A stretch of DNA of 64,000 bases. It comes from Bispira polyomma. Its lineage: Eukaryota. Shown here in pieces: positions 2,772 through 42,378 of this stretch. The translations under genes were made by a program, and so were the position numbers. Under the pieces are notes generated by a model. The model did no database searches and was not told the origin of the DNA. It saw nothing but the letters and a program-made list of their open reading frames with translations. The stretch is taken from positions 33,356,001 through 33,420,000 of the forward strand of contig OZ287755.1 in NCBI GenBank assembly GCA_965649765.1. Reading direction: 5' to 3'. Each line of letters begins with the position of its first letter. Positions within the stretch are counted from its first letter, which is position 1.

Positions 2772-2905
2772 GAATCTAATGATGACTTGTCAGACAGTGA
2801 GATGGAGAAGCTGGATGGGGCCCTGGCAGCTGCATTTAAAAGTATGAAGAGGACCAAGTCTGAGGAGAAACAAAAACGGGTACAGCTAAAGCACTACAAG
2901 ATGAG
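2772..2905 (+). CDS. MYBBP1A: MYBBP1A exon (ESNDDLSDSEMEKLDGALAAAFKSMKRTKSEEKQKRVQLKHYKM-R)
   Basis: ttacag|GAA acceptor; AG|gtatgt donor; phase 2. Confidence 0.88.
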
Positions 2906-5008
2906 GTATGTGTGAAATGTGTACATGTCAAACACTGTAAGATGAGGTATGTGTGAAATATGTACATGTCAAACACGTCAAGATGAGGTATGTGTGAAAT
3001 GTGTACATGTCAAACACTATAAGATGAGGTATGTGTGAATTGTGTACAGCTCAAACACGTCAAGATGAGGTATGTGTGAAATGTGTACATGCCAAACACG
3101 TCAAGATGAGGTATGTGTGAAATGTGTACATGTCAAACACTATAAGATGAGGTATGTGTGAATTGTGTACAGCTCAAACACTATAACATGAGGTATATAT
3201 GAAATTTGTACATGTCAAACACTATAAGATGAGGTATGTGTGAAATGTGTACATGTCAAACACGTCAAGATGAGGTATGTGTGAAATGTGTACCTGTCAA
3301 AACATGTCAAGATGAGGTATGTGTGAAATGTGTACAGCTAAAGCACTACATGATGAGGTATGTGCGAAATGTGTACATGCCAAACACGTCAAGATGAGGT
3401 ATGTGTGAAATGTGTACAGCTCAAACACGTCAAGATGAGGTATGTGTGAAATGTGTACAGCTCAAACACTACAAGATGAGGTATGTGTGAAATGTGTACA
3501 TGTCAAACACGTCAAGATGAGGTATGTGTGAAATGTGTACACGTCAAACACGTCAAATTGAGGTGTGTGTGAAATGTGTACATACCAAACACGTCAAGAT
3601 GAGGTATGTGTGACATGTGTACAGCTCAAACACTATAACATGAGGTATGTGTGAAATTTGTACAGCTCAAACACGTCAAGATGAGGTATGTGTGAAATGT
3701 GTACATGTCAAACACGTCAAGATGAGGTATGTGTGAAATGTGTACAGCTCAAACACGTCAAGGTGAGGTATGTGTGAAATGTGTACAGCTCAAACACGTC
3801 AAGATGAGGTATGTGTGAAATGTGTACATGTCAAACACATCAAGATGAGGTATGTGTGAAATGTGTACAGCTCAAACACGTCAAGATGAGGTATGTGTGA
3901 AATGTGTACAGCTCAAACACATCAAGATGAGGTATGTGTTAAATGTGTACATGTGTACATGTCAAACACATCAAGATGAGGTATGTGTGAAATGTGTACA
4001 GCTCAAACACGTCAAGATGAGGTATGTGTGAAATGTGTACAGCTCAAACACATCAAGATGAGGTATGTGTTAAATGTGTACATGTGTACATGTCAAACAC
4101 ATCAAGATGAGGTATGTGTGAAATGTGTACATGTGTACATGTCAAACACATCAAGATGAGGTATGTGTGAAATGTGTACAGCTCAAACACGTCAAGGTGA
4201 GGTATGTGTGAAATGTGTACAGCTCAAACACGTCAAGATGAGGTATGTGTGAAATGTGTACATGTCAAACACATCAAGATGAGGTATGTGTGAAATGTGT
4301 ACAGCTCAAACACGTCAAGATGAGGTATGTGTGAAATGTGTACAGCTCAAACACATCAAGATGAGGTATGTGTTAAATGTGTACATGTGTACATGTCAAA
4401 CACATCAAGATGAGGTATGTGTGAAATGTGTACAGCTCAAACACGTCAAGATGAGGTATGTGTGAAATGTGTACAGCTCAAACACATCAAGATGAGGTAT
4501 GTGTTAAATGTGTACATGTGTACATGTCAAACACATCAAGATGAGGTATGTGTGAAATGTGTACATGTGTACATGTCAAACACATCAAGATGAGGTATGT
4601 GTGAAATGTGTACAGCTCAAACACGTCAAGATGAGGTATGTGTGAAATGTGTACAGCTCAAACACATCAAGATGAGGTATGTGTTAAATGTGTACATGTG
4701 TACATGTCAAACACATCAAGATGAGGTATGTGTGAAATGTGTACATGTGTACATGTCAAACACATCAAGATGAGGTATGTGTGAAATGTGTACAGCTCAA
4801 ACACGTCAAGATGAGGTATGTGTGAAATGTGTACAGCTCAAACACATCAAGATGAGGTATGTGTTAAATGTGTACATGTGTACATGTCAAACACATCAAG
4901 ATGAGGTATGTGTGAAATGTGTACATGTGTACATGTCAAACACATCAAGATGAGGTACGTGTGAAATGTGTACAGCTCAAAGCTTAAGCACTATAAGATG
5001 AGGTATGT
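2878..5008 (+). repeat. 41/49-bp minisatellite (~50 units), each unit carrying the exon's 5' splice site AAGATGAG|GTATGT
   Basis: Unit AAGATGAGGTATGTGTGAAATGTGTACA(TG/GC)TCAAACAC(G/A)TC; the 49-bp variant has an extra 8-nt TGTGTACA duplication; higher-order patterning in the 3' half. Confidence 0.97.
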
Positions 5009-8180: not shown

Positions 8181-10187
8181 CACCTCTGCCGTTGTGGGTT
8201 CCAATCTTGGCTACTATTGGCAAGTTTGTGAGTAATTTGGCAGTAGACTTGCTGAAGGGTGGTAATTTGTGAACTGCCTGTCGTGATATGACACAAACGT
8301 GTTAAAACGTGTTGAGCCTTGTAGTATTGTCCAAAGTCCAAGTGTCTCTTGGGTTGAATTGATACAGTTCTTCCTTGTCCCATGCCCTCTATACCTAATT
8401 ACCTCTACCAAATCTCATGTAAATCAGTTCAGTATTTTCGTGATAAACAAACGAAACAGCTGAACTTGGCGAACAACATATAAATAACATTTTTCATAGA
8501 GGTAATAAAATAGATGAATTTATGTGAAAATCCATTAAATGTAGTATGGTGACTAGGCCTATAATGTGGTGACATTATTATACAATCTTAAATTTAAAAA
8601 ATGCAAAAGTTTCTCAGAAATTTTTAAAGGTTTTGCAATTGTAGAATTATAGATAATATAGCATGTTTTACATTATGTTTCAATTAAGTGATTAATACAT
8701 TTTAATGACTAATACAAGCCCCAAATTGCATCAGTAGCTTGAAAAATTATCACAAATGACTTCAGTATATTATGCCATTGTCAGAAAATAATTTAAAATA
8801 TACTTGACAGTATTGTCAGTAGATTTTGCTATTGATATATAATACATTTATATGGTTCATTGTGGATTATTAGTTGTGATCACATTTGCTGTAAAATTAT
8901 CAAAGCTGATATTATATGTATTGACTATTCAGTGGCTCTTTTCTTTTCAAAATTTCAACAGTGTCCATGTTTATTTTAGGATATCTTGAGCAGGGACAAG
9001 TGTAGAGAATTAACCTCTACTGAATATAGAAAAATAATATTTACATTGTTTGAGAAACCTTGGGCGTTTATCTTAAACTAAATGCTTTGTGTAAACTTGT
9101 GCAGACATATACGCGGGGACTATTGAATATTCATAGGATTTTTCTTTCAGATCAAATGCTTGGGTCATCAGGCCTCTTTAAGTGCAGAGGAATTTATTTT
9201 ATATATCTTTGTTCAAATAATACATGTAGTTGAAATATGTACACTGTACTAAGGTGGCATAGTTTCAACAGAACAAAAATGTTATGTTGAATGATGCTTT
9301 TAGAAATATATACCTTAAAGGCTTTTAATACACAGGTTCTGCCAAATTGTAACAATGGTTTGACAAAGATCTTTACATTAGAATTTAAAAAAAACAACAG
9401 TTGAATAAACTTAACCAACAAAGCCTACAAAAGAATACAGTTGTATATAATGTGGTATAGTACGGTGTATGAAAACTCTCAAACAAGAAAACTGCCCATT
9501 ATTTCCTGGAAAACTGGCTATTCAACATATTTTTACCCATTACCAGTCAATATGCATATTTTACCCATCCTAGTAAATATTAAAAACGCTTTGTTGGAAT
9601 AAATGACAAATATATTTTTGTGGTAACTACTTAAGGTGATATTTGAAACGTCCACAGATTCTCATGAAAAATACTGGTCTATAATATCAATATTCTGTTG
9701 AAGATTAATAAAGTAATTCTAGGAAATAGTTAACGTACCATATAGTAGAACCATGTTAAGTCGAATCTGACGGGAAAATCTAAAAATCTATTTAACTAGC
9801 TTAAAGTTTTATTAGGAAACAGAAGTTATACATTACAATGAAGTCTTGTTAAGTCGAATCTGACGGGACCATAAAAAATTTGCACTTAACAGAAAATATA
9901 CTTAACTAGGCTAAATTTTAATTAGTAATTATACATATACACTGGAACCCTGTTAAGTCGACTCTGACGGGACCATATAAAAGTTTTACGTAATTGAAAT
10001 TCCACTAAACAGGGTAAATTTTTATTAAAAAATTTAGCAATGGGACCTTACATAACTTCTACTTAACAAGTAATTCCACTTATAGGTTTTTTTTGCCTGT
10101 AGTTAAATTAATAGTGATCAATCCATAAATCTATGCAATCTATCACGTCTCAACCTCCCTTCCTCCTATTGATGTACGGTCTTGAAA

Positions 10188-10270
10188 CAGGTGTGCCAGA
10201 AATCTGCATTTACAAATTACAAGGTATTGAAAAAACACCTTACTGCAAATGACAGATCTGACACAATTGA
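10188..10270 (-). ncRNA. pre-miRNA hairpin 1, miR-277-like; predicted 3p UAAAUGCAGAUUUCUGGCACAC (10191-10212)
   Basis: 5p arm UGUGUCAGAUCUGUCAUUUGCA pairs with the 3p arm; CAUC (CNNC) begins 17 nt 3' of the predicted mature end. Confidence 0.8.
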
Positions 10271-11997
10271 GCACAAGGCAAGTGTTCAGTGAGGGTTTGA
10301 TAGTGATGCACTGCAACTACTTTGTATAAATAGTATTCATTTGTATACAGTAGAACCTCTATTATCAGAAATTCTGGTGTTTGAATATTGATTTTATGAA
10401 CACACTTTCTCTCCCCCAGATTTACATTTTCCTGTTGTTTTAGAATACAATGCATGTCTTCTATTTTATGAACCTTATATCTAGACCAAATGTTGCTCTC
10501 CCAACATATTCAGAAAATAGAGGTTGTTCATTGTTTTCTAGATACAAGAAACATATCTACTTGTCTGATTGTGACAAAAAAAGTGTGAACTCTCGGGATC
10601 ACTGTACATTAAATGTAAAGCTCCAAATATACACGTTTGATTCTATTTCTTTAACATCCCTCCTTTTCAACTGTGTGTGTATTTAAAAAATCCAGAATCC
10701 AGTTTATATATATAAATAAAATAATACATCTTTTTCTATGTATTTTTACCTTCTGTGATGCAAAAATAACAAAAAAAAATCTCTTTTTATTTTAATTCAA
10801 AAACCTTTTAACTCCTGCTTTAAAAAAACACAACTAATTTACAAGTGCAATCCTCCCTAATTGATTCACACCTAGTGGCTAATTGTTTGTAACCATTTGG
10901 CCCTGCTTTTTGAACTCCTGACTGAGTCACCTTTTGATATTACCTATACATAGGTAGCATACTGAGAAGAGCCCAGGTATCAAGGTATACAGTATGTGTC
11001 ATTATGTAATCAATAGCTAGGCCGCACTTTTTGTCTTGTCAAAATGAAAAAAGAAAAAACAATATACTGCAACCTGTTTTATGCATTAATTCTCTATGTC
11101 ACCACTTGATAATCCTCTATCCCATGTGTTCTTTCGTGGACAATTCTATATCTCTCAACTGAAGTGCTTTGCAGATTGCAGTCATTTCATTTATTCAATA
11201 GATTTATCATTCAATATGTCCCCAATTGAATTTACTATACATAAACTCAATGTGTGTACTTCCCAACAACAGAAGGTATTATTGATGTATTCAAATTGGT
11301 CCACACATGCATATTCATGAATACAGCCAAAAGTCACCATATATAGTAGTACATATACACCATATATCAATTACCACAGCAGAATACAATGGGTAATGAA
11401 GGTATCAAAGATTCTTTCTATTGATTCCATGTGCTATTGTTGCTGGGAGGTCACAGCTGTTTAAAACCCCTCTCTCTATTTTAAAAGGTTTAATGTGGCT
11501 TTGAACTATCTCTCAATGCAGCATGTTTTATTTAAAACAGCTGAAGTGACCCTCTTCATGCATTTAGGTAAATCCAATAAAATTCTAATTATTTGGCAGA
11601 AATACAATTTTCTTTGAAGAATTTATTAAAAAAAAAAATTCAAAAAGCTGCTCAGGCCTAAAGTCAGGCAGATTTGGTACTAATTTCAGATAATAATAAT
11701 AATTTCAGATAAACTGTGAAACACCAATAACTACTTTTGACATATTTTACTTAGTTTTACAAATCATTTAAAATTTAATAAAAAAAATAATATAAACATG
11801 GCTATTAACTGCTTCAGTTCATTTCAACCAAGTGATAATGTGGTACAAATTCTGGTGAATATTCTTAACAACACAGTGACCACAATCTAATTATGAACTT
11901 ATACCCTGGAGTATACCTCAGATAGGCTGTATATATGACATATCCAATTGTTTTCTTGTCATTCTTCATTCTGTATCATGGTGATGTGTACATGGGT

Positions 11998-12071
11998 TGA
12001 GGTGTGCCAGATATTGCATTTATGACCATATGTAGAACCAAAAACACAAACCCAACATTTGACACAACTCA
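11998..12071 (-). ncRNA. pre-miRNA hairpin 2, miR-277-like; 3p UAAAUGCAAUAUCUGGCACACC (12001-12022)
   Basis: 5p GAGUUGUGUCAAAUGUUGGGUUUGUG forms a ~26-position stem with 4 G:U pairs that exist only on the minus strand. Confidence 0.85.
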
Positions 12072-12184
12072 GGAAAGATTAAAAAAACATCAAAAAAACA
12101 CTGCCAAAAAACTAGCAAAGATTAAAGCTGAAAACTTCTATTTTTCCTATTCTCTTGATGCTTGATTGTTTACTTCATCAAAAT

Positions 12185-12724
12185 TCCTCTAATTAGTGAA
12201 CACCTCCAACTAGTGAACACCTCCAATTAGTGAACACCTCAACTAGTGAACACCTCCAATTAGTGAACACCTCCAACTAGTGAACACCTCCAATTAGGGA
12301 ACACCTCCAACTAGTGAACACCTCCAACTACTCAACACCTCCAATTAGTGAATACCTCCAATTAGTGAACACCTCCAATTAGTGAACACCTCCAACTAGT
12401 GAACACCTCCAATTAGTGAATACCTCCAACTAGTGAATACCTCCAATTAGTGAAGACCTCCAACTAGTGAACACCTCAAATTGGTGAACACCTCCAACCA
12501 GCAAACCCCTTTTCCTGGTGCTACTTGTGAATTGTACAGGACCTCTGAATAGTGAACACCTCTCTTGAACATTATTTTTTTAACTTTTAACATAAAACCT
12601 TGGTACATTTTGTCCTGGTATTTTTTGTCCTGATACATTTTGTCCCGATACATATTGTCGCATCCCATAACAAGCATTATGACTGTGGTCCCATAAACAT
12701 TCACTATATGGAGGCTTTACTGTA
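12185..12724. repeat. 17-bp minisatellite (AA(T/C)TAGTGAACACCTCC, ~18 units, 12190-12500) inside a Tc1-like MITE
   Basis: Tandem units are directly visible; the right end TTCACTATATGGAGGCTTTACTGTA is the inverted counterpart of the unit. Confidence 0.85.
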
Positions 12725-12868
12725 CAATGTATTATTCTCTTCTCTCCTGGGTTTTTTCTGCTGTCTGAACTTTTGACATTGTAAATAAATCTTTGTTGTA
12801 GCTTGTATTGTTATGTACCACCCCCTTTGGACTGTGGCACTGATCTCTGTTGTATCTTATACCTTTGT

Positions 12869-12951
12869 TAAGATGTGCCAGACATTGCATTTATGATTTA
12901 GGTTTGGGTGAATCATCACACACACACAAATACAACATTTGACACAGCTCA
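12869..12951 (-). ncRNA. pre-miRNA hairpin 3, miR-277-like; 3p UAAAUGCAAUGUCUGGCACAUC
   Basis: Complementary arm UGUGUCAAAUGUUGUAUUUGUG; long loop. Confidence 0.82.
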
Positions 12952-13177
12952 TAGAAAACTATTTTTTTTTTTAAGTCAAAGACACCGGTAGAAATAATAA
13001 TAAATTTGCCTTTTTTTGGCAAATTTAATTGTATTTACACGAATACTGGGCACTCTATTATCCAAAATTTCAATTATCCAAACATTCATGATTTTTTTCG
13101 TTCACTTCCAACTTCCGATCTTTAAAATGTCAGTTTTATTGTGAAGATATCCTTTGAGACTGTATAATTACTCTGGT

Positions 13178-13258
13178 TGAGATGTGCCAGACATTGCATT
13201 TATGATTTGTTTTGGGTGCAAAAACCTCCCACACAAACACAATATTTGACACAGCTCA
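13178..13258 (-). ncRNA. pre-miRNA hairpin 4, miR-277-like; 3p UAAAUGCAAUGUCUGGCACAUC
   Basis: Complementary arm UGUGUCAAAUAUUGUGUUUGUG. Confidence 0.82.
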
Positions 13259-13519
13259 TAGAAATCTGGGTTTTGAAAATAAAAAGAAATGGTAAAAGTA
13301 ATAATAAATTGGCCTTTAATCGCAAATGTTGATTCTATATACACAATACTGGTTACTTTAAGGCTACCAGTAGTACAGTGGATCCTCTATTATCCAAAAT
13401 TTCAATTACCCGAATGTTCAGGATTTTTTCATTCGCTGCCCTCTCTCAGTCTTATGTCAATGCGATAGTGTTCTATTGTCAAGATATCCTGTTTCACTGT
13501 TATGTATAATTACTCTAGT

Positions 13520-13599
13520 TAAGACGTGCCAGATATTGCATTTATGATTTGTTTTGGGTGAAAAACCTCCCACACAAACACAATATTTGATACAGCTCA
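13520..13599 (-). ncRNA. pre-miRNA hairpin 5, miR-277-like; 3p UAAAUGCAAUAUCUGGCACGUC
   Basis: 3 differences in 22 nt from recalled Drosophila miR-277 (UAAAUGCACUAUCUGGUACGAC); complementary arm present. Confidence 0.82.
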
Positions 13600-13857
13600 T
13601 AGAAATGTAGTCTTTAAAAGTCAAAGAAAATTGTTAAAGTAACAATAAATTGGCCTTTTTTTTTGGCAAATGTTAATTCTATTTGCACAATATTGGTCAC
13701 TTTAAGGTTACTTGTATTACCATAGAACCTCCATTATCCAAAATTTCTATTTCCCAAATGTTCAGGATTTTTCTGTTCACTGCCCATTTTGATCTTTTAT
13801 AATGTCAGTTCTATTATTAAGATATCCTTTTAGACTGTGATGTATAATTACTCTGGT

Positions 13858-13941
13858 TGAGACGTGCCAGATATTGCATTTATGATTTAGTTTTGGGTGA
13901 AAAATCACACCTCACACAAACCCAACAGCTGACACAGCTCA
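13858..13941 (-). ncRNA. pre-miRNA hairpin 6, miR-277-like; 3p UAAAUGCAAUAUCUGGCACGUC
   Basis: Complementary arm UGUGUCAGCUGUUGGGUUUGUG. Confidence 0.82.
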
Positions 13942-14208
13942 CAGGAAACTACAGTCAAACCTCTTTCTAGTAGAACTCTGTTAACTAAATTTACCTTTAA
14001 TTGTGGAGAGAACCATCTAGTCCTAGTCCTCCAATGATTTTTGTAAATCCACTCTATCACATGGAAATCCTGCTCTAGTAGAGTTTTGACCTAATGAGGG
14101 AGTTTAAAAGGCAAAATAGACTTGTATTTTTCTATTTATTTTTTAAATTGACATTCTAATCACTTTAACATTAGTAGTAATAGTAGTAAACATATTTCGC
14201 TGCAATAT

Positions 14209-14292
14209 CTGTGCAAGAGGTGTGCCAAAAATTGCATTTATGACTTTGAGATTGTAACATAACAATTCAATCATTGACACACGGCAGCACAG
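14209..14292 (-). ncRNA. pre-miRNA hairpin 7, miR-277-like; 3p UAAAUGCAAUUUUUGGCACACC
   Basis: Complementary arm plus basal stem CUGUGC/GCACAG; CAGC (CNNC) at +17. Confidence 0.82.
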
Positions 14293-14776
14293 TTTTATAC
14301 AAAGTAAATTTAAACTGGAAATAACATGTATATAAAATTTTTAATTATCATCTTTTTCAGTAAAAAGGGGTAGTATGTTTTTCTTGTATTTTCAAGTTCC
14401 ATTAACATTCAGTCAAGTTTTTCGTTTGAGTTTTTATAATCTTTTGCAATGAATTAATAAAATTTCATTGAAATGCAAAGGAGCATGCCTATAGTAAACA
14501 GTGCTGCACACTAAAAAAGAATTTTCCCACAATATATACTGGTACTTATAAATATAAAACACTATTGTATTTTTTCCAAATACATGTTGTTCGTGCATTC
14601 ATGTATACAAAATAATACTTCCTTTTACAGCAATTTTAGAAAATGTTCATAATGAGGTTTTGCTTAAAGTCTCCTTGTTTTGTTTTTTTTAAACTTGTAA
14701 AATGAAAATGTAAAGTCTCGTTTTAATACGAAATGTGAACAAAGAGTGCAATTGACTTTCTGAAGACTGGTACAAA

Positions 14777-14851
14777 TGAAAGGTGTGCCAAAAATTGCAT
14801 TTATGAGTAAGAAAAGAACATAAGACTGCAAGTTTTTAGCACAAATCTCAC
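14777..14851 (-). ncRNA. pre-miRNA hairpin 8, miR-277-like; 3p UAAAUGCAAUUUUUGGCACACC
   Basis: Complementary arm UGUGCUAAAAACUUGCAGUCUUAUG; CUUC (CNNC) at +17. Confidence 0.82.
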
Positions 14852-15664
14852 TGTATTAAGTGTTATACTGGCGGGAAAAATTCATTAGTGTATTTATACA
14901 TGCACATGTGTAGTTCAATTAGACCAGACATCATACAGGTCCTTTCCATATTTTAACTTCTTTATAAGTTATCCATAATTCTATTTTTTTTTTTTTACCA
15001 TTCTACATGATGGTCACAGATCATTTCACTTTTAAATATTCTTCCATTCTTTTTCCCGTCCCCCCAATCCTTTCACTTTTAATAAATGATATACACCAGG
15101 TAACAAAGACATCAATTGTCTTGCAAGAGATTCTATTAATGGGGGTCTGTCCCCCTCCATTGAGCCAATAATCATCAGAATTCAATGGTATGTACTGCCT
15201 GTCATTAATTGAATTATTTTCATTCTCATAGATCTTGGGGGTATTGGGTCTATTGACAAATGACTGCCTGCTGTTTAAACATGTTTTGCATGCTTCATGA
15301 ATTGATTTCTCTCTTCTCATTCCTGCTCCCTTTGCCTGAGCATGTTCATCATAGATCTGACATCAGGTTTTGTGTGTGAACAAAAGCTAAGTACCCTCCA
15401 TAATCTTGTGTTCGTTCATAAACCTGTCCACACATAACTTTATTGACATTATTCTACATACAATCTACTGCTGCTTCATTTTCTATCCACTGTGTTATTA
15501 AAATGTTATTAATTTAACAGTTTTTCCATGAAAAGTTAAATGATGTTTGTACATTTTCCATTTCAGTAGTCTCTGCTACAGCTGTGTAGTTTAAATCTTA
15601 TTTTATTTACAATGAGGCGGCGATACTATTAAAAGCTCTCTCAGTGCATGATGAAGCTTTAACA

Positions 15665-15745
15665 CAGTGATAGGTGTGCCATTAGTTGCATTTATGGAAA
15701 TCAATAAATCACACAAATTGCAACTGTTGACACAATTCTTAACTG
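15665..15745 (-). ncRNA. pre-miRNA hairpin 9, miR-277-like; 3p UAAAUGCAACUAAUGGCACACC
   Basis: Complementary arm UGUGUCAACAGUUGCAAUUUGUG; CUUC (CNNC) at +17. Confidence 0.82.
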
Positions 15746-16286
15746 CTGTCTATTATTTTTTTTGAAGAAGAAGAAAAAGAAGAAAAAAAACCTGACCAAA
15801 TAAACACACAGATTGTACCATACATACATATCATATGATTTGCTCTGTAATACTCTTTATGTACAAAAAAGGCAAAATTTCATCAATTTCTCCGAACTAC
15901 ATTTTATACTTTGAGATCTTATTTTTTTTAGTGTAAATACTTCTGTTGTAACTGCTAAAAAGTGATATTGTAATTCAGTCATTTTTTACTGTCTGTTCTA
16001 CATTTATAAAATTCCTTTCTTGTAAAATACAAATAATTTGTAGTTTGTGTATAAATAAAATCTGTATATTTATTATCATATTAATCCATATGTTTAAAAC
16101 TTTTGATTTCCTTTTTATTTGTAATAAACATATGTGTGGTACCATGTGGTAGTAAACATGTATATGTGTATAATACACAAACTGTACACACTTACTATGT
16201 ATACAGTTTATAACATGTGACTTTGTACAATTACCTACAATTACACCAACAAACTTGTCTCTTTGGCTGTTGTGGAGTCACTTTTT

Positions 16287-16374
16287 GAAAGAGGTGTGCC
16301 ATGAATTGCATTTATGACAAGAATTACTTCAACAAATGCACCACATAAATTTCAATTGATGACACGTCTCTTCT
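16287..16374 (-). ncRNA. pre-miRNA hairpin 10, miR-277-like; 3p UAAAUGCAAUUCAUGGCACACC
   Basis: Complementary arm GAGACGUGUCAUCAAUUGAAAUUUAUG; CUCC (CNNC) at +16. Confidence 0.82.
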
Positions 16375-16727
16375 AAGTACACACACATATTCCTAGCTTG
16401 TAGGCGGAGGTTTTTATATACTAGCCATTATCATCTCTCTTTTGTCTCTCTTGTATAAGTGTGACCTGGGAAAAACAACAACTGCGTCTGATACTGTTGT
16501 AACTTCTCTTAATTTGTAGTGACACATTCAATCTCAATGAATTTTTTTTTGTATGTCAATTACATTTCACTATATAGATGTCCTACTAGTATTTGTAGTT
16601 TTGTACTAAGTATAACTACAAGCTCTGTAGTCAGTATTGATTAAACTCTGGTTTGGCTTCCATTCTCTCTCTCTTTCGCCTTTTTTTTTATTTAGAAAAA
16701 TATAGTCTTCTCATTGTTTTCTTTTTC

Positions 16728-16806
16728 GAGATGTGTGCCATAAGTTGCATTTATGATATGATAAAGTACAGACGACATAAACAAGTCAACTTTTGACACA
16801 CATTTC
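16728..16806 (-). ncRNA. pre-miRNA hairpin 11, miR-277-like; 3p UAAAUGCAACUUAUGGCACACA
   Basis: Complementary arm AUGUGUGUCAAAAGUUGACUUGUUUAUG. Confidence 0.8.
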
Positions 16807-16950
16807 TTTTTTAAACTTACTGTCAAGTTATTAAGATAAATTTGTCTTGAAAATCCGTCCTCTGTACTGAGATGTTATTCCAAGTCATAGAAGTGACATT
16901 CTGTATTTTGTGTCCATGTGGCACATTCATTTCTACATGAGATTCTTTAA

Positions 16951-16970
16951 ACTGATTTTGACACATACTT
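16951..16970 (-). pseudogene. Deleted hairpin copy (mature arm and loop lost)
   Basis: ACTGA is joined directly to TTTTGACACATA, whereas neighbouring ~200-bp units read ACTGA-aagatgtgcc...-TTTTGACACATA. Confidence 0.65.
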
Positions 16971-17118
16971 CTGTCTTGTTAGAGTTACTTTGGTGCCATA
17001 TTTCAAGTAATTTGTCTAGAATTCTTTATTGACTGGTCTCCTGACATGTTATACCAAATCCTATCTGTATATTGTGTCCACATAATTCATTCATGTTTTG
17101 ATGTTATTTTATTTCACT

Positions 17119-17191
17119 GAAAGATGTGCCATAAGTTGCATTTATGATTGAAAACTGGAACATAAACAAGTCAACTTTTGACACATATTTC
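17119..17191 (-). ncRNA. pre-miRNA hairpin 12, miR-277-like; 3p UAAAUGCAACUUAUGGCACAUC
   Basis: Complementary arm AUGUGUCAAAAGUUGACUUGUUUAUG. Confidence 0.8.
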
Positions 17192-17327
17192 TTTACTTAG
17201 GTTAAGTATCAAACATAAATTTATCGGAATATTCTTTATTAACTATCTCTCCAATATCTAATGCGATATCTTATCGCTGTATATTGCATCCCTGCAAAAC
17301 ATTCAGGCTTCTGTGTTATTTTTTACT

Positions 17328-17406
17328 GAAAGATGTGCCATAAGTTGCATTTATTATTAAATAAAATGGAACATAAACAAGTTAACCTTTGACACATATC
17401 TCTTTC
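17328..17406 (-). ncRNA. pre-miRNA hairpin 13, miR-277-like; 3p UAAAUGCAACUUAUGGCACAUC
   Basis: Complementary arm AUGUGUCAAAGGUUAACUUGUUUAU (weaker pairing). Confidence 0.75.
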
Positions 17407-17542
17407 TTGTTAGATTGACTTTGGCATTAAGTATTTAATTTATCTGAAAATTCTCTATAAAATAACTTCCTCTAACATGTTATTCCAAATACTATTTCAA
17501 TGTCCATGTAAGACATTCATGTTTCGGTGTTCTTTTCTTCAC

Positions 17543-17618
17543 TGAAACATGTGCCATAAGTTGCATTTATGATGAATAAACTGGAACATAAACAATTCAA
17601 CCTTTGACACATATTTCC
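17543..17618 (-). ncRNA. pre-miRNA hairpin 14, miR-277-like; 3p UAAAUGCAACUUAUGGCACAUG
   Basis: Complementary arm AUGUGUCAAAGGUUGAAUUGUUUAUG. Confidence 0.78.
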
Positions 17619-17714
17619 AACACAAACTGACTTCAACATTATAAAAAAAAACCCAGGCTCAACAATGAAGCTGTGAGCAAATGTATTCATTTTACAATAT
17701 ATCTTGCAAGTTTT

Positions 17715-17796
17715 TAATGATAGGTGTGCCATAAGTTGCATTTATGAATTTCAATGATCCACCACAAGTGACAACCCATGACACTGCTCTCATTAA
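17715..17796 (-). ncRNA. pre-miRNA hairpin 15 (first in transcription order), miR-277-like; 3p UAAAUGCAACUUAUGGCACACC
   Basis: Complementary arm GUGUCAUGGGUUGUCACUUGUG; basal stem UUAAUGA/UCAUUAA. Confidence 0.8.
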
Positions 17797-18504
17797 TTTA
17801 TTCACACTTTTTGACATCAAAAAAGAAAAAAAAAATTACAAATACATTCTAGTTCCTGCCTTGAAGGAATTATTTCTTAAACTTTTTTTAAAATTTAACA
17901 TAAATGTTTAAAAGTGTCAAAACATTTTGACTTTTAGTATAAATATAAGACCACTTACCTGTAAATATGTACATATTTGTATCACCTTTAGTTGAAGCCT
18001 TTCTCTCTCCTTTCTTCCAAAAAATTAATGCAAAATATTAATATATTTCTATGCTATAACATATACTGGTATATTCCTTGCTTTATAAAATGCTTTTGCT
18101 GAATCTATTTTTTTGTTTCTTCCTGGGTTATTTTGTTTGTCTGCCTCCTCCAAGATATATTTGTTAGATACATTAAAATTTTTACAACTGCTTTCCCCAC
18201 ACAAAAATAGATATAGCTTCTTCCCCATCACTTTACAACTGTGACCAAGTTGATGTGGTCACACCCCCTTTTTATTGAGAAAAACGCCTCCCAGTTATCT
18301 CCTGATTTGTGCAAGTGTGTCAAAATGATAGTGAACCCCTCTAGGCCTCTCTTTTTCTTACTACACACCCCATATACCACCACACTGATACACTACACCA
18401 CACACACACCCCCACTTTTACAAAAGTGCCCCCAAATATGTCACCACCAAAATATGTCACCACTCCAAAAATATGTTGCATGTGTAACACATGCATTGCC
18501 CAAA

Positions 18505-23509: not shown

Positions 23510-23845
23510 GTTTAATCACCTTTTAAAACTATTTAAAGTAAAATACACTGTGTTCTGTTTTAAATATGCCCAGTATTAGTGTACGTCTCAATAAGTACTA
23601 CCTACCAAACTGTCACATGTGTAAATTTAGAGATGAGAATGGCTCAGTATTGATTTAGAGAAAGGATTTGTTGACCAGTATTACATCTGACAAAACTCAA
23701 CGGTAGAAATACATCATGACATCCCTAACAGGTACAACATGGTATAGTTGTTTTAACTTTTATACAAGGATAGCTTTGGTACCGTATGTATGTATCAAGT
23801 TACCTTTACAAATAGTAACAGGTGTGCCCCTCTGTGTATTTCCAG

Positions 23846-23903
23846 GTGTTTAGATCTACTAGAAGTCCTGGTTCAGAATGAGACATCAACTGTCTTTCTC
23901 TTG
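23846..23903 (+). CDS. MYBBP1A: MYBBP1A exon (R-CLDLLEVLVQNETSTVFLL)
   Basis: ttccag|G acceptor completes the AGG codon; TTG|gtaagt donor. Confidence 0.88.
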
Positions 23904-37164: not shown

Positions 37165-39210
37165 GTGAAACTTAATGCAGAAAATTTCAATAATGGCTCA
37201 TTCTTTAAACTAGCAAAATCTTTTTTGAAAAAGCCTACTGATAAATCTATTCCCCCTATGTTATCTCAGGATGGTACTCTGATAACTGATGATAAAGAAA
37301 AAGCAAATGCTTTTAATTCTTTTTTTGCCGAAGCTAGTATATTAAGAGAAGAGCAGGCTCAATTACCAGTTGATGACACCCCATTGGGTGGTGTTTTACA
37401 CAACATTGTAGTGTCAGAAAAAGAAGTACTTGACCAGATATCAATACTTAACTGTAACAAATCATATGGCCCCGATGGTCTTTCACCTAAATTTATAAAA
37501 CTAGCAAATCGCTCATTGGTAAAGCCGTTAACAAAATTATTGAACCTTTCATTGTCTACGGGGAAAGTTCCTAAGCTGTGGAAACAAGCTAATGTGGTAC
37601 CGTTACTCAAAAAAGACAGCAAGAATGTGTTAGGACGGGGATTGTTATTCAAACTGAAGAAATGGGGTATCAGTGGTACATTACTCCAGTGGTTTGAAGA
37701 TTACCTAAAAGATAGGGTTCAACGAGTTGTTATCAATGGTCAATTTTCAGACTGGAGCAAAATATTTGCTGGGGTACCACAAGGATCAGTACTGGGGCCT
37801 CTTTTGTTTTTGGTTTTTATTAATGATATTACAGAAGTTGTAAAAAATTGTAGCTTAAGACTTTTTGCAGATGATACTTGCCTTTTTATTGAAGTTGACA
37901 ATCGAATAGATTCAGCAATTAAATTAAATGAGGACCTAAGAAATATTGAAAAATGGTCTCAGAATTGGCTTGTTACATTCAATCCTTCAAAAACCGAATC
38001 AATGATTATTGGCCTCAAACATCACAAAAATGAAAATCCAAGGTTGTACTTACACAACACACCAATTGTTAATGTGGCTAAACATAAACATGTAGGGCTT
38101 TGGCTTGAGGATAACTTGGGCTGGCATATGCATATAGATGAAATCAGCACTAAAGCTGGAAAGCGATTGAACATGCTAAAGCAGTTAAAATATCAAGTTA
38201 GCAGAATTACACTGGAGAAAATGTACTTTGCTTTTATTAGACCCATTTTGGAATATGGTGATGTTGTTTGGGCTGGGGCTAGCCACTCTGATTTACGCAA
38301 ACTAGATAGTATTTAGGTTAATGCTATGAGGCTTGTGTCTGGTGCTCCTTTTAGATCTAACATTCGCTCACTCTTTGAGGAACTAGGCTGGCAAAATTTA
38401 TGCAGTAGGCGTGAACAGCATGTGTTGATAATGATGTATAAAATTACACATGATTTAGCTCCGAGTTATCTAAAAAACTTAATTCCTCCTGCAATTGGAA
38501 GTACCATCACATATCAACTTCGAAACCGACATGATTTTCAGGTTCCAAAATGTAGAATAAATATGCACCAAAGTTCTTTCATTCCAGCTGGGATAAAACT
38601 CTGGAATGAACTTGACAACTCACTCAAATATCCAACAACTCTCTCTACATTCAAATACATATTACGCAAACGACAATTTAAGTGTAATGAAAAACTAGTT
38701 AAATTCCGTAAAAAATTGTTTGTTGAAGGTGAACGGTACTGGAATGCAATTCATGCTAGAATGCGCATGAACTGTAGCCCTCTTAAGGAACACCTCACAA
38801 AATATTTACATGTCTTGAGCAATTGCACTTGTGATTGTGGCCTATCTGATGAAAATAATACACATTTCCTTTTAGATTGTATAAACTATGCCATACCGAG
38901 ACAGTTCATGTTAGCTAAATTATATGATATTCCTGCTGTTACAACTGAAACTCTATTATTTGGTAGCCTTGACTTGACATTTGAACAAAACCAGACAATA
39001 TTTCGAACAGTTCAAGAATTTTTAAGGGAAACAAACCGGTTTCATAGTTTTTAATTGCTACAGTGCCAACACACCTTCTCATCTTTTCATTCATTATTCT
39101 ATGTTATTTTTCCATTTTGTTTCTTTTGTATATATATCTTCCTGCGAGAAGGCTTTATAATAATCTTTTTGATTTTGCCTGATTGTTTTGTTCCAATAAA
39201 AAAAAAAATA
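37165..39210 (+). mobile_element. 5'-truncated CR1/L2-group LINE ORF2 (reverse transcriptase) with an internal deletion and a premature stop
   Basis: GPDG, WKQANVVPL, GVPQGSVLGPLLFLVFINDI, LFADDT, and a C-terminal CxC..E...HFLLxC motif. The NYRPIS...KAFD segment is missing near 37620; TAG at 38314-38316; AATAAA plus A-run at ~39196. Confidence 0.92.
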
Positions 39211-39239
39211 TTGTTTATGAAAAAAGGATATTTACAGGC

Positions 39240-40100
39240 CAGCTTGTGTCTAGACCTGAGCGTACACCACTGGTTGCCAAATCGGCTGTATGTGCCCAAC
39301 CTGTGTTGGAAGCGTCTAAAATAAGAGAAGATTGTGCTCTCTTGGATGCAAAAACTTCCTCTACCAAGACATTTAAGGGTATTCCCACCATTAAAATTGT
39401 ATCTTAAATGGTCGGTTACCGGTATCTGGATGTCCAGTCACTGAGGAAATTGTCAAATGGATTTTAGGTACCGAATGATACTGTCCTCTCCAGACTGGCC
39501 AACACCCATCAATGACTTTAACATTCTGGATATCAACAATCGAGAAATTGTTACCAATAACATGGCTTATGACAAAATCGAACACTTCTGTTGGTTAGGA
39601 AATACAATGCCTGTTCACATCGAAGAAGTAGCCGATAAAGCAATCGTTGATTGGGCCGAAGTTCGGATTCCCCAAAGGTAACCACTAAGTCCAATTGTGG
39701 AAAAACCCCTTGCCAGGAAAAATGGAAACCATCGAATGCTGTTCACATGGATTCAGTCCTTCACAACGGCGACTCCGATGAATCTGTGCCAAGCTGAATT
39801 CATAAGGATACGAAAGTAAGCATCTAACACCACCCAGTACACAAAAATGGCCTGAAATAATGCAAATTTCATTGATCTGCAAAAGACAAGACCTGTCTTG
39901 TAAGTGACTGTCATTAGGAGTCAGGTGTTCCGCACAGCGAATCCGGGACGAATCTGGGTGAATCCGAATCAACAAGGATATGAAAAGTGACGAAACTGCT
40001 TCCGCCAACGTGTAACTGCCGAAAATCTGCCATTTTCGCCCATGGAGTGATGATTCTTCGCTACGAATTCTATGAATCTCTGTGAATCTGAATCTTTGAA
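39240..40100 (-). mobile_element. Degenerate DIRS-type (tyrosine-recombinase retrotransposon) RT/RNase H relic
   Basis: Frameshifted minus-strand motifs LDAYFRILMNSAWHRFI, FSWQG, LP(F)GIRTSAQ, PNQQKC, RMLKSLMG and RNase H-like LDASNTGW. Confidence 0.7.
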
Positions 40101-40419
40101 TTTATAAGAATATGAGAAAACGTTAAAATGCCCCAAATATACCTATTTCGGCTAGAAAGCGCTGCAAAATCCGCAAATCTCCGCCCCATCGCCACGTGGA
40201 TTTGGACAGCTAGAGGGCGAGTTCTCTCTTCACCTCGCCATTAATACTGAACTCGAAAGAAGAGATATAAAAGCCAGACTTACCCCATCTACTCTTCAAT
40301 ATCTGAGAGGTTCCTCCATTTCCCTCCCGTGAGCACTTCGAGAACTTTCCCCAAATCTCACACTGCACACTTCGTGCACGCTGGGAGAATGGTATTTTGT
40401 CACAGCCATTTGTAAAGAT

Positions 40420-42378
40420 ATCCATTTTATTTGCAAATGGCGTGAACCGGTATCCATCTACACAATATTTGACAATGTATATACACAGATATTAGTAAAC
40501 GAGGCTAAAGTTTACCGCAGAAATTCTGGATCACAGATGCACATCTTAGCAGTTCGCGTGACCGTGTGAATGATTTGTATTGAATCATTTATCCAGGTAA
40601 CCTAGGTGAGATGACCCCTGAACCAATGAATTTGAAGATTTACACTGGTGGACAGGCGTAACTATGGCCTTTGTGATGTCACTGTATTGTGATGTCATGA
40701 TGGTTGTGACATCACTGGACAGTGTAATGGACTTATATTAGATTTGATGCCATAAACCAATATTGGATATTCCATTATGGGTAAAAAATACACGGTTTCG
40801 CCGGAGAGGCTCATCAGACGCATTACAACTAAAATTATCTGTTTAGTGGTCAAGTATAGGTTGACCCTAGTGGTGGTAATTCCTGGATTGGGAATATTTT
40901 ATGTTAATTTGATAGTCATTGTGAACATAATTTTTGGGTTGGCGTTGTCCCATAACCACTTTAACTCTGAGTGATTTCCTCTACTTATCAAGTGAGTAGT
41001 ATAAGCAGGTTTAGATTAAGTGAGGTTATTGGGGTAATTGAAAGATTGGAGTTAGTGTCCAATCAAAATTAGTAGGTGTAGAGTCACTAGGTTACATTTG
41101 AATACCAAGCCTGGTGGGGTATGGTGATGGCTGGTCTGCTCCATAGGTCGTTGTTGATAATTTTTTGAAATGTGGCAAAGGACCTATGGGTTAGACCTGG
41201 GTTTTATTCCTGTATGTTGAGACCCTGAGGTGCATTGGTTCTTAATCTGTGTTGCCAATGCCTTTCGATTTTCCTCCTGATGTTGAGGGCTTAAAGGGTG
41301 GGCATGGATAAAGTCGACAATGTGGATTTCAATGTCGTCTAGTCCATGGTGGTCGGGGAGATTAAAGTGTTGACCAATGGTGTCCCTTGAGTTTTTGGAC
41401 GTGATATTGTAGAAGTGACCTTGGAATCTATCCATTAGTCGTCGTTTAGTTTGCCCGACATACTGTATCTTGCAGGTTTTGCATGTGATACAATATATTA
41501 GATTACCACTCTTGCAGTCCACTCTAATTTTTGTGGAGTAACTACGACTAGTGTAGGTGCTGATTATCCAGCCAGACAGATTTAGTCTTGGGCAATACCT
41601 ACATGTTTTGGTATTACATGGAAATTCATGAGCTACTGGGCCATCACGGGTTGGTTTTGGCTTAGGTGGGTAATCAACTTTGGCTGTTACAAGGATGTCC
41701 TTGAGATTCTCATTGCGTCTGTAGCCAAAAATGACCTTTTTATCATGTAGGTGTTTGGTGTCATTTGATCTTGTGAGAAAATCCCAGTTTTTGGTTACAA
41801 TCTCTTTCATTGTGGTTGGTAGGTTGTGATTAGGAAGAGATTTTTGTTGGGTTTAGCCTGCTCCTTATTATGTGATTCTAAAAGTTTATCACGATCCTGT
41901 CTACATGCTAGGATAAGGGCTTCTTCAATGAGGTCCTGTGGGTAGCCTCTTCTTTTTAAGTGGTGGGCTAGGGTGATAGAATGTTTGTCAAAATTTTCTC
42001 TCGAAGAACATATGCGACGGACTCTTAGAAATTGGCTATAGGGTAAACTGGTCTTACAGTTCTTGGTGTGCGCAAAGGTATACAGCAGATAGTTGTGTGA
42101 ACCTGTGGGTTTGCTATATAAGTCCACATCCAGTGTCCCCTCTTTGTTGAGGTAAACAGTGGTGTCAAGGAAATTTACCGAAATTTCCGAGATTTCAGCC
42201 GTGAACTTAATGGTTTCATGGCATGAATTTAAATGTTTTATAAAGGCTTCTAAAGTAGGTTTGTCTTCAGTCCATATCATGAAGATATCATCTATAAATC
42301 TCAGCCAAACAAGTGGTTGAGTTGGGTAATTATAAGCATGGGTTTCCTCAAAGTTTCCCATGTAATTATTGGCATGTG
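40420..42378 (-). mobile_element. 5'-truncated Penelope-like retroelement (RT C-half, GIY-YIG endonuclease, 3' pLTR region), frameshifted
   Basis: WLRFIDDIF, VNFLDTTV, YSKPT, LPYSQFLRVRRICS (41807-42361); NLIYCITCKTCKIQYVGQTKRRLMDRFQGH (41184-41810). Confidence 0.92.
40788..40830 (-). ncRNA. Minimal hammerhead ribozyme core (probably defective) in the Penelope pLTR
   Basis: Minus strand CUGAUGA-GCC-UCUCC-GGC-GAAAC-CGU-GUA; stem I partner is poor. Confidence 0.55.

Follow-up and report, generated by a model that had tools for sequence, protein, structure and literature searches.

Fifteen probable miR-277-family microRNA genes clustered antisense within an intron of a MYBBP1A-like gene

The host intron and the hairpin cluster

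The window analyzed (the whole stretch of DNA under study, 64 kb of Bispira polyomma contig OZ287755.1) contains part of a MYBBP1A-like gene on the + strand of a probable annelid. An exon at 2771-2906 matches positions 708-756 of the Pfam DNA_pol_phi model with 28.1 bits (cut-off 27.6) and is bounded by an AG acceptor and a GT donor. Earlier exons of the same domain lie upstream of the window. The exon is followed by an intron of 20.9 kb (2907-23845, GT at 2907 and AG at 23844-23845), across which the reading frame continues. The probable next exon (23846-23903) is preceded by a polypyrimidine tract plus AG, is followed by GTAAGT, and is in frame with the exon at 2771-2906. This segment resembles human MYBBP1A, although a database search returned no hit for it.

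A cluster of 15 hairpins of the miR-277 family occupies 10183-17796 of this intron on the minus strand, and is probably transcribed as one or a few polycistronic primary transcripts. The + strand motif GTGCCA-N(5-6)-TGCATTTA occurs exactly 15 times, with matches at 10193-17744, whereas none of 100 dinucleotide-preserving shuffles gave a match. TGCATTTA alone occurs 20 times in the window against 5.2 expected, and the five sites outside the cluster do not fold (z about +0.7 for the four tested). All 15 copies fold on the minus strand as hairpins of 71-89 nt in which UAAAUGCA opens the 3′ arm. Values for z range from −1.5 to −6.7 and are at or below −3.6 for 10 of 15 copies. The minus strand always folds better than the plus strand, and the folds contain 62 G:U pairs that would be A-C mismatches on the other strand. 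Between 16 and 21 of 22 guide positions are paired in every copy, and loops are 15-34 nt. These values satisfy the criterion for an animal microRNA hairpin (Ambros/MirGeneDB) of at least 16 of about 22 paired duplex positions. The 5′ arm motif GUGUCA (TGACAC on the + strand) is present in 13 of 15. There are 11 distinct 22-mers, because hairpins 3 and 4, 5 and 6, 7 and 8, and 12 and 13 share identical guides. A covariance model run with filters off recovered exactly these 15 hairpins in the window, and the next minus-strand hit scored 17 bits. No other strong hairpins were found between them.

Individual hairpins are numbered along the + strand, and all guides given are predicted 3p products on the minus strand. 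Hairpin 1 (10183-10276; guide 10212 down to 10191) is a 6-nt spacer variant with z −6.70, an MFE of −33.6, 19 of 22 guide nucleotides paired and CNNC at +17. Hairpin 2 (11994-12077; guide 12022 down to 12001; z −4.73) contains 4 G:U pairs and scores 21.5 bits with Rfam mir-277. Hairpin 3 (12865-12957; guide 12893 down to 12872; z −5.58) carries the same 22-mer as hairpin 4 (13174-13264; guide 13202 down to 13181; z −5.55), although whole units are only about 75% alike; hairpin 4 has the best Rfam mir-277 score in the window, 23.5 bits. In hairpin 5 (13516-13605; guide 13544 down to 13523; z −2.83) the 5p arm reads GUAUCA, and its guide is identical to that of hairpin 6 (13854-13947; guide 13882 down to 13861; z −5.01; CNNC at +19). 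Hairpin 7 (14212-14292; guide 14240 down to 14219; z −2.59) has 17 of 22 positions paired and CNNC at +17. In hairpin 8 (14775-14854; guide 14803 down to 14782; z −5.47; CNNC at +17) the 5p arm GUGCUA pairs with the same guide as that of hairpin 7. Hairpin 9 (15666-15745; guide 15694 down to 15673; z −3.65; CNNC at +17) has a unique guide. Hairpin 10 (16286-16377; guide 16314 down to 16293) is the weakest copy and is possibly decaying, as its z is −1.53 and 17 of 200 shuffles fold as well, but its seed and UGGCAC block are still intact. Hairpin 11 (16725-16811; guide 16753 down to 16732; z −5.27) has 21 of 22 guide nucleotides paired. Hairpin 12 (17116-17196; guide 17144 down to 17123; z −3.98) has the top covariance model score of 79.8 bits, and its guide equals that of hairpin 13 (17325-17407; guide 17353 down to 17332; z −3.02), in which only 16 of 22 are paired. 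Hairpin 14 (17541-17622; guide 17569 down to 17548; z −5.26) has 21 of 22 paired and CNNC at +19. Hairpin 15 (17716-17796; guide 17744 down to 17723; z −2.64; 19 of 22 paired) would be first in the direction of transcription. Contigs built independently from reads of two samples span 12532-17850 with no differences and at single-copy depth, so hairpins 3-15 are not an assembly artefact.

Conservation and family assignment

Mean pairwise identity among the copies was 86% for the 3′ arm, 66% for the 5′ arm, 53% for loops and 51-53% for flanks, with random sequence at 46-48%. This order, guide arm over star arm over loop and flanks, is the one required of animal microRNA genes. Even the youngest duplicate units are only 74-78% alike overall, yet carry identical or near-identical guides. 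In the structural alignment 94% of cells are paired, and 50 cells show changes on both sides, against 17.7 in shuffles (0 of 500 reached 50) and 4-10 when the partner is slid. A CNNC motif lies 15-19 nt after the predicted Drosha cut, typically at about 17 nt, in 8 of 15 copies against a background of 0.137 (p = 3e-4), inside flanks that otherwise cannot be aligned. The copies are old and under selection. Note that five hairpins (5, 7, 10, 13 and 15) fold only moderately better than shuffles (z −1.5 to −3.0) and may be decaying, and that no promoter or poly(A) site was identified for the cluster.

The hairpins were assigned to the miR-277 family by seed, arm and 3′ similarity. The seed AAAUGCA at nucleotides 2-8 of the predicted 3′ arm product is invariant in 15 of 15, as is the UGGCAC block, and is the same as in the published Platynereis, Capitella and Biomphalaria miR-277. 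UGG sits at about nucleotides 14-16, and the hairpin size fits the family. Guides 5 and 6 differ from the Rfam mir-277 consensus at 3 of 22 positions. The 3′ end, however, reads GGCAC rather than GGUAU or GGUAC, and no copy reaches the Rfam RF00730 gathering threshold of 43 bits: four copies score 18.5-23.5 bits and the other eleven have no mir-277 hit up to E = 10. The canonical copy of the same genome reaches only 38.7 bits, so this mainly arthropod model is strict for this lineage. Neither miR-317 nor miR-34 was found in the window; linkage to them marks the ancestral locus and not every paralogue.

Related loci elsewhere in the genome

An intact miR-317/miR-277/miR-34 locus was found on another chromosome (contig C5). 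Its miR-277 sits between miR-317 and miR-34, scores 38.7 bits with Rfam mir-277 (E = 1.5e-6), and has a first 16 nt equal to the published Platynereis, Capitella and Biomphalaria miR-277. The order and spacing are those reported for Platynereis (317, ∼3.5 kb, 277, ∼26 kb, 34; here 7 kb and 23 kb). A third locus, on contig C3, another chromosome, holds at least 752 more same-seed hairpins in a homogenised array of roughly 200 kb. These are arranged in units of about 1 kb that each contain a TATA-like spacer, which was found at least 67 times; promoter activity of this spacer is conjectural. The hairpin unit occurs only at these three loci, and is not dispersed like a transposon.

The sequence-only reading of this DNA had described 15 same-seed hairpins on the minus strand, with 11 distinct 22-mers, 4 G:U pairs in hairpin 2 and copies 5 and 6 at 3 of 22 differences from Drosophila miR-277, and that observation is confirmed, with the 3 of 22 differences counted here against the Rfam mir-277 consensus. 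Its interpretation is supported only in part. The claims that held are that these are paralogues with the selection profile of functional microRNAs and not a satellite, that they have the miR-277 seed on the 3′ arm, that they lie antisense in a MYBBP1A-like intron, and that miR-317 and miR-34 are absent beside them. It had also proposed that the cluster was a relocated miR-277 expansion. A search for a canonical locus elsewhere, which had been set as a test beforehand, showed this to be wrong: the cluster is an extra set of paralogues. It also missed that the main dosage lies in the C3 array. Its suggestion of an early-embryo role stays a hypothesis, which the layout of the C3 array makes more plausible for the family, but not specifically for this cluster.

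Published copy numbers of miR-277 are low: 1 in Platynereis, 2 in Capitella, and paralogue labels up to P4 in Lingula and up to P7a in Schmidtea. The C3 layout resembles the zebrafish miR-430 locus, in which many tandem same-seed hairpins of a few subtypes are present, with 313 TATA-type promoters and 655 triplets in 577 kb (bioRxiv 10.1101/2021.08.09.455629). Xenopus miR-427 is organized in a similar way. Family, seed (AAAUGCA, not AAGUGC) and phylum differ, so any likeness would be convergent, and the window cluster itself has only 15 diverged copies and no recognisable repeated promoter. In scale the window cluster corresponds to the C. elegans mir-35-42 cluster and other same-seed polycistrons, in which a handful to a dozen diverged same-seed hairpins lie in one short cluster. 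That family is unrelated, and its embryonic function, shown genetically there, would be no more than an analogy here.

Interpretation of the cluster

We conclude with good confidence that the 15 hairpins are very probably real, unannotated microRNA genes of the miR-277 family, which arose by repeated, mostly ancient tandem duplication. No paper searched reports these sequences. In the mechanism we infer, one or a few minus-strand primary transcripts would be cut by Drosha/Pasha and then Dicer, and the 3′ arm, which starts with 5′ U and has its weakly paired end at UAAAUG, would be loaded into Argonaute. The resulting ∼22-nt guides would repress mRNAs that carry UGCAUUU(A) sites. The 11 isoforms differ at nucleotides 9-13 and 20-22 and would share one seed-defined target set, so that they would add dosage and perhaps tune pairing beyond the seed. 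Hairpins, strand, selection profile and family likeness follow directly from the analysis, whereas transcription, processing, arm choice, targets and any embryonic role are inferred from sequence alone. In this view the cluster is the small, diversified branch of a family that also includes the single canonical gene and the C3 array.

Three other explanations were considered and all are unlikely. The best of them is that the hairpins are relics, former miR-277 duplicates no longer transcribed or processed that are drifting as pseudogenes inside the intron. Five copies have weak z values, the case for expression rests on sequence alone, and the much larger C3 array could supply all the dosage the animal needs. 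However, flanks and loops are at random-level identity while seed and UGGCAC are invariant, and stems are kept by compensatory changes. Drift that saturated the flanks would have destroyed the arms as well. Less likely still, the hairpins could be derived from a MITE, SINE or satellite, in which case any small RNAs would be siRNAs or piRNAs. About 146 dispersed repeat copies do carry a same-sense TAAATGCA-N4-TGGCAC core, and the C3 locus looks like a satellite with higher-order repeats. The dispersed copies, however, share only a ∼50-nt core, lack the 5′ arm and leave the seed segment unpaired. Spacing in the window is irregular (175 to 1810 bp), the flanks cannot be aligned, Tandem Repeats Finder reported no array there, and stem length and bulge pattern are those of a pre-miRNA. 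Finally, action in cis on MYBBP1A splicing or expression, for example through antisense transcription or structured intronic RNA or DNA and with the miR-277 likeness being secondary, is suggested by the antisense position and by a UGCAUUUA 8-mer in the exon just upstream of the host intron (2831-2838, + strand), but is the weakest reading, as the same guide sequence is conserved at two other loci that share no flanking sequence with this one, the canonical locus lies on a different chromosome from the host gene, selection is strongest on exactly the seed of a known microRNA, and one 8-mer in 64 kb is within chance.

A more speculative possibility, which we consider unlikely but not excluded, is that this worm has turned miR-277 into a miR-430-like system. 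The C3 array, perhaps together with the 15 diversified copies, would then fire at zygotic genome activation, flood the embryo with AAAUGCA-seed guides and clear maternal mRNAs. This would be an independent, spiralian invention of the strategy of fish miR-430 and frog miR-427, using a different and otherwise low-copy family.

Same-seed microRNA arrays with extreme copy number are few, and the best studied (miR-430, miR-427 and miR-35) act in the earliest embryo; in the papers searched, no such system is described for annelids, molluscs or their allies. A dosage such as that of the C3 array is otherwise known from the microRNAs that clear maternal messages in fish and frog embryos. This genome offers a natural series of one ancestral gene, a 15-copy diversified cluster and a roughly 750-copy homogenised array, with exact coordinates and guide sequences that bear on whether spiral-cleaving embryos use microRNA-driven maternal clearance. 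It also shows how a conserved microRNA can be amplified while selection holds only its seed and a short 3′ block.

Identification and folding of the hairpins

To confirm the repeated motif, the window, which contains no N, was scanned on the + strand for GTGCCA-N(5-6)-TGCATTTA. The motif occurs 15 times between 10193 and 17744 and in none of 100 dinucleotide-preserving shuffles, while TGCATTTA alone occurs 20 times against 5.2 expected. On the minus strand each copy folds into a hairpin of 71-89 nt whose 3′ arm opens with UAAAUGCA. Fold z-scores against shuffles run from -6.7 to -1.5, with ten copies at or below -3.6 and hairpins 5, 7, 10, 13 and 15 being the weak ones. Every copy folds better on the minus than on the plus strand, and the folds hold 62 G:U pairs in all, 4 of them in hairpin 2, as the sequence-only reading had stated. 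The 15 copies give 11 distinct 22-mers, which can be told apart from one another and from the C3 and C5 guides (described below) at nt 9-13. A covariance model built from the copies and run without filters finds exactly these 15 in the 64 kb. Of the five TAAATGCA sites outside the cluster, four were folded and do not form hairpins, and no other convincing strong hairpin was found between the copies. The observation made from the sequence alone is confirmed in every detail.

A search for sequencing runs returned three DNA-type runs of one study. Contigs assembled from reads of two samples cover 12532-17850 in one piece, at single-copy depth and without a difference, which confirms the DNA but does not bear on RNA. 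Between hairpins 2 and 3, at 12186-12497, lies a 17-bp satellite of 18 copies. Read-contig depth there is 50-60 times the single-copy level, so the unit is abundant elsewhere in the genome, and it breaks the short-read contigs.

Sequence conservation and family assignment

Mean pairwise identity among the 15 copies is 86% for the 3′ arm, 66% for the 5′ arm, 53% for the loop and 51-53% for 60-nt flanks, where unrelated sequence from the same window gives 46-48%. Only two sub-arrays still have alignable units, namely hairpins 3-6 (units of about 310-340 bp) and hairpins 12-14 (units of about 210 bp). These units are 74-78% identical overall, yet they carry identical or nearly identical guides. 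Tandem Repeats Finder does not report the cluster at all. A structure-guided alignment was then made of the 15 copies, the canonical miR-277 gene of this genome and eight copies from the array on contig C3 (both described below). In this alignment 94% of cells are paired, and fifty cells keep a pair through changes on both sides, compared with 17.7 in column shuffles (0 of 500 reached 50) and 4-10 when the partner is slid. The variable center of the guide covaries with the star arm through AU, UA, CG, GC and GU pair types. A CNNC motif lies 15-19 nt after the predicted 3′ cut in 8 of 15 copies, five times within 16-17 nt, against a background rate of 0.137 (p = 3e-4), and the flanks are otherwise unalignable. 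Note that CNNC is a Microprocessor-enhancing motif of bilaterian primary microRNAs. This is the signature of old, functional microRNA paralogues with the 3′ arm as guide, and not that of a satellite, a young repeat or neutral DNA.

The seed AAAUGCA and its position on the 3′ arm are those of miR-277. Published sequences agree: Platynereis, Capitella and Lingula share UAAAUGCAUUAUCUGGUAUGUA (supplement of PMC11213123), and Biomphalaria has the same first 19 nt (PMC7328434). Guides 5 and 6 differ from the Rfam mir-277 consensus at 3 of 22 positions. A search of the whole window with Rfam at gathering thresholds gave no hit, and below threshold four copies score 18.5-23.5 bits against a gathering score of 43. 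The canonical copy in this genome also stays below the cut-off, at 38.7 bits (E = 1.5e-6), and the model is therefore strict for this lineage. We assign the hairpins to the miR-277 family as paralogues by seed, arm and 3′ likeness, although the curated score criterion is not satisfied.

Genomic context and related loci

On the + strand, Pfam DNA_pol_phi, which we take to be the MYBBP1A/Pol5 domain, matches exons upstream of the window as well as the exon at 2771-2906 (positions 708-756, 28.1 bits), which ends at a GT donor. A probable 58-nt exon at 23846-23903 is preceded by a polypyrimidine tract and AG, is followed by GTAAGT and continues the reading frame; it appears similar to human MYBBP1A. 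The cluster thus lies antisense in a 20.9-kb intron, as the sequence-only reading had claimed. A UGCAUUUA 8-mer, a perfect site for the seed of the family, lies at 2831-2838 (+) in the coding exon just upstream of this intron, but a single site is within chance. At 2880-4981 (+), 49 tandem copies of a 41-bp unit repeat the exon-intron junction (CAAGATGAG/GTATGTGTG) of the exon ending at 2906, forming a splice-junction minisatellite of the 'mirage' type. Transposon remains at 37165-42361 comprise a reverse-transcriptase ORF on the + strand (RVT_1, E = 6.6e-15) and a GIY-YIG nuclease ORF on the - strand (E = 1.3e-5), where the GIY-YIG domain suggests a Penelope-like element.

To survey related copies, the 1.035-Gb genome, which has at least 14 large contigs, was searched with the same motif. 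The N5 form occurs 21 times, 14 of them in the window, and the N6 form occurs 10 times, one of them in the window. Of the 16 matches elsewhere, only that at 78205159 on contig C5 folds as a hairpin. This copy (78205109-78205187) lies 7 kb after an exact miR-317 19-mer (78198133) and 23 kb before a miR-34 that passes the Rfam threshold (78228061-78228134), all on the + strand, and this is the order and spacing reported for Platynereis. Its miR-277 3′ end reads GGCACAAAU instead of GGUAUGUA. So the ancestral locus is intact, and the window cluster is an addition, not a relocation. The earlier interpretation is therefore supported in part: the antisense placement and the family hold, but the proposed relocation does not. 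The Platynereis-like spacing fits an annelid origin for the genome but does not prove it. Similarly, a search for the annelid-specific MIR-2692 found only a hairpin on contig C7 (30172666-30172685, MFE -31.8) whose 3′ arm has the MIR-2692 seed and differs from the Capitella guide at 2 of 20 positions, which supports the phylum weakly.

The covariance model uncovered a third locus, on contig C3 (10311800-10512600), with the guide UAAAUGCA(G/A)UGCUGGCAC. The N4 form TAAATGCA-RTGC-TGGCAC occurs 752 times (164 forward and 588 reverse), with none in the control, and the array holds at least 752 exact copies. All listed positions of this motif and of the model hits lie between 10.31 and 10.47 Mb, and the spacer motif extends the array to 10.51 Mb, in three blocks of alternating orientation. 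The array is described from 14 overlapping 3-kb loci plus genome-wide pattern counts, and 108 hairpin sites are present in the 24.7 kb that were read. The repeat unit is 1061 or 905 bp and holds four or five hairpins of three types plus a spacer of about 330 bp, in which a TATA-like element, TATATAAGG, lies roughly 95 nt before the first hairpin. A 20-mer around that element recurs at least 67 times, only at this locus. The three hairpin types show the same profile as the window copies (guide 91-100%, star 71-78%, flanks 46-52%). Between the window and either the C3 unit or the C5 locus, no homology was found beyond the 33-40 nt guide arm. A metagenome scan for the C3-type guide gave no hit.

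Other spacings (N1-3, N7-9) gave only scattered matches, with no cluster among them. About 146 dispersed repeat copies from at least three subfamilies share a ~50-nt core containing TAAATGCA-N4-TGGCAC in the same sense as the microRNA guide, but they do not fold like these hairpins. Read antisense, the core would be a seed plus 3′-supplementary target site for the family.

Interpretation and comparison with published families

The best-supported reading is ordinary microRNA biogenesis from minus-strand primary transcripts, with AAAUGCA-seed guides acting on UGCAUUU(A) sites. The hairpins, their strand, their conservation profile and their likeness to miR-277 were established from the DNA, whereas expression, processing, arm use and targets are inferred from sequence alone. 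The 5′ U and the weak pairing at the 5′ end of the guide would favor loading of the 3′ arm. The invariant UGGCAC keeps its distance from the hairpin base and not from the seed, from which it is spaced by 4, 5 or 6 nt, and this suggests that the block may serve processing of the stem as much as target pairing.

Alternatively, though this is unlikely, the hairpins could be dead relics or, less likely still, the source of repeat-derived small RNAs. Both alternatives are weakened because one guide sequence is preserved at three loci that share no flanking sequence beyond the guide arm. A cis role on MYBBP1A is the least likely and is weakened by the same fact. Satellite, MITE and assembly artefact were also rejected as readings.

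None of the guide sequences of the window or of the C3 array occurs in any paper searched, and no report was found of a miR-277 expansion in annelids or of a spiralian maternal-clearance microRNA. Platynereis, surveyed with small RNAs from early stages, has one Mir-277 and no other predicted microRNA starting UAAAUGCA. Capitella has two paralogues, and paralogue labels reach P4 in Lingula and P7a in Schmidtea. The closest system in architecture, which the C3 array resembles, is zebrafish miR-430, with 313 TATA-type promoters and 655 triplets in 577 kb. On this evidence, the window very probably holds a previously unreported example of a lineage-specific same-seed microRNA cluster, a type of locus already known, and it is the miR-277 family of this genome as a whole, with about 770 copies, that is unusual.
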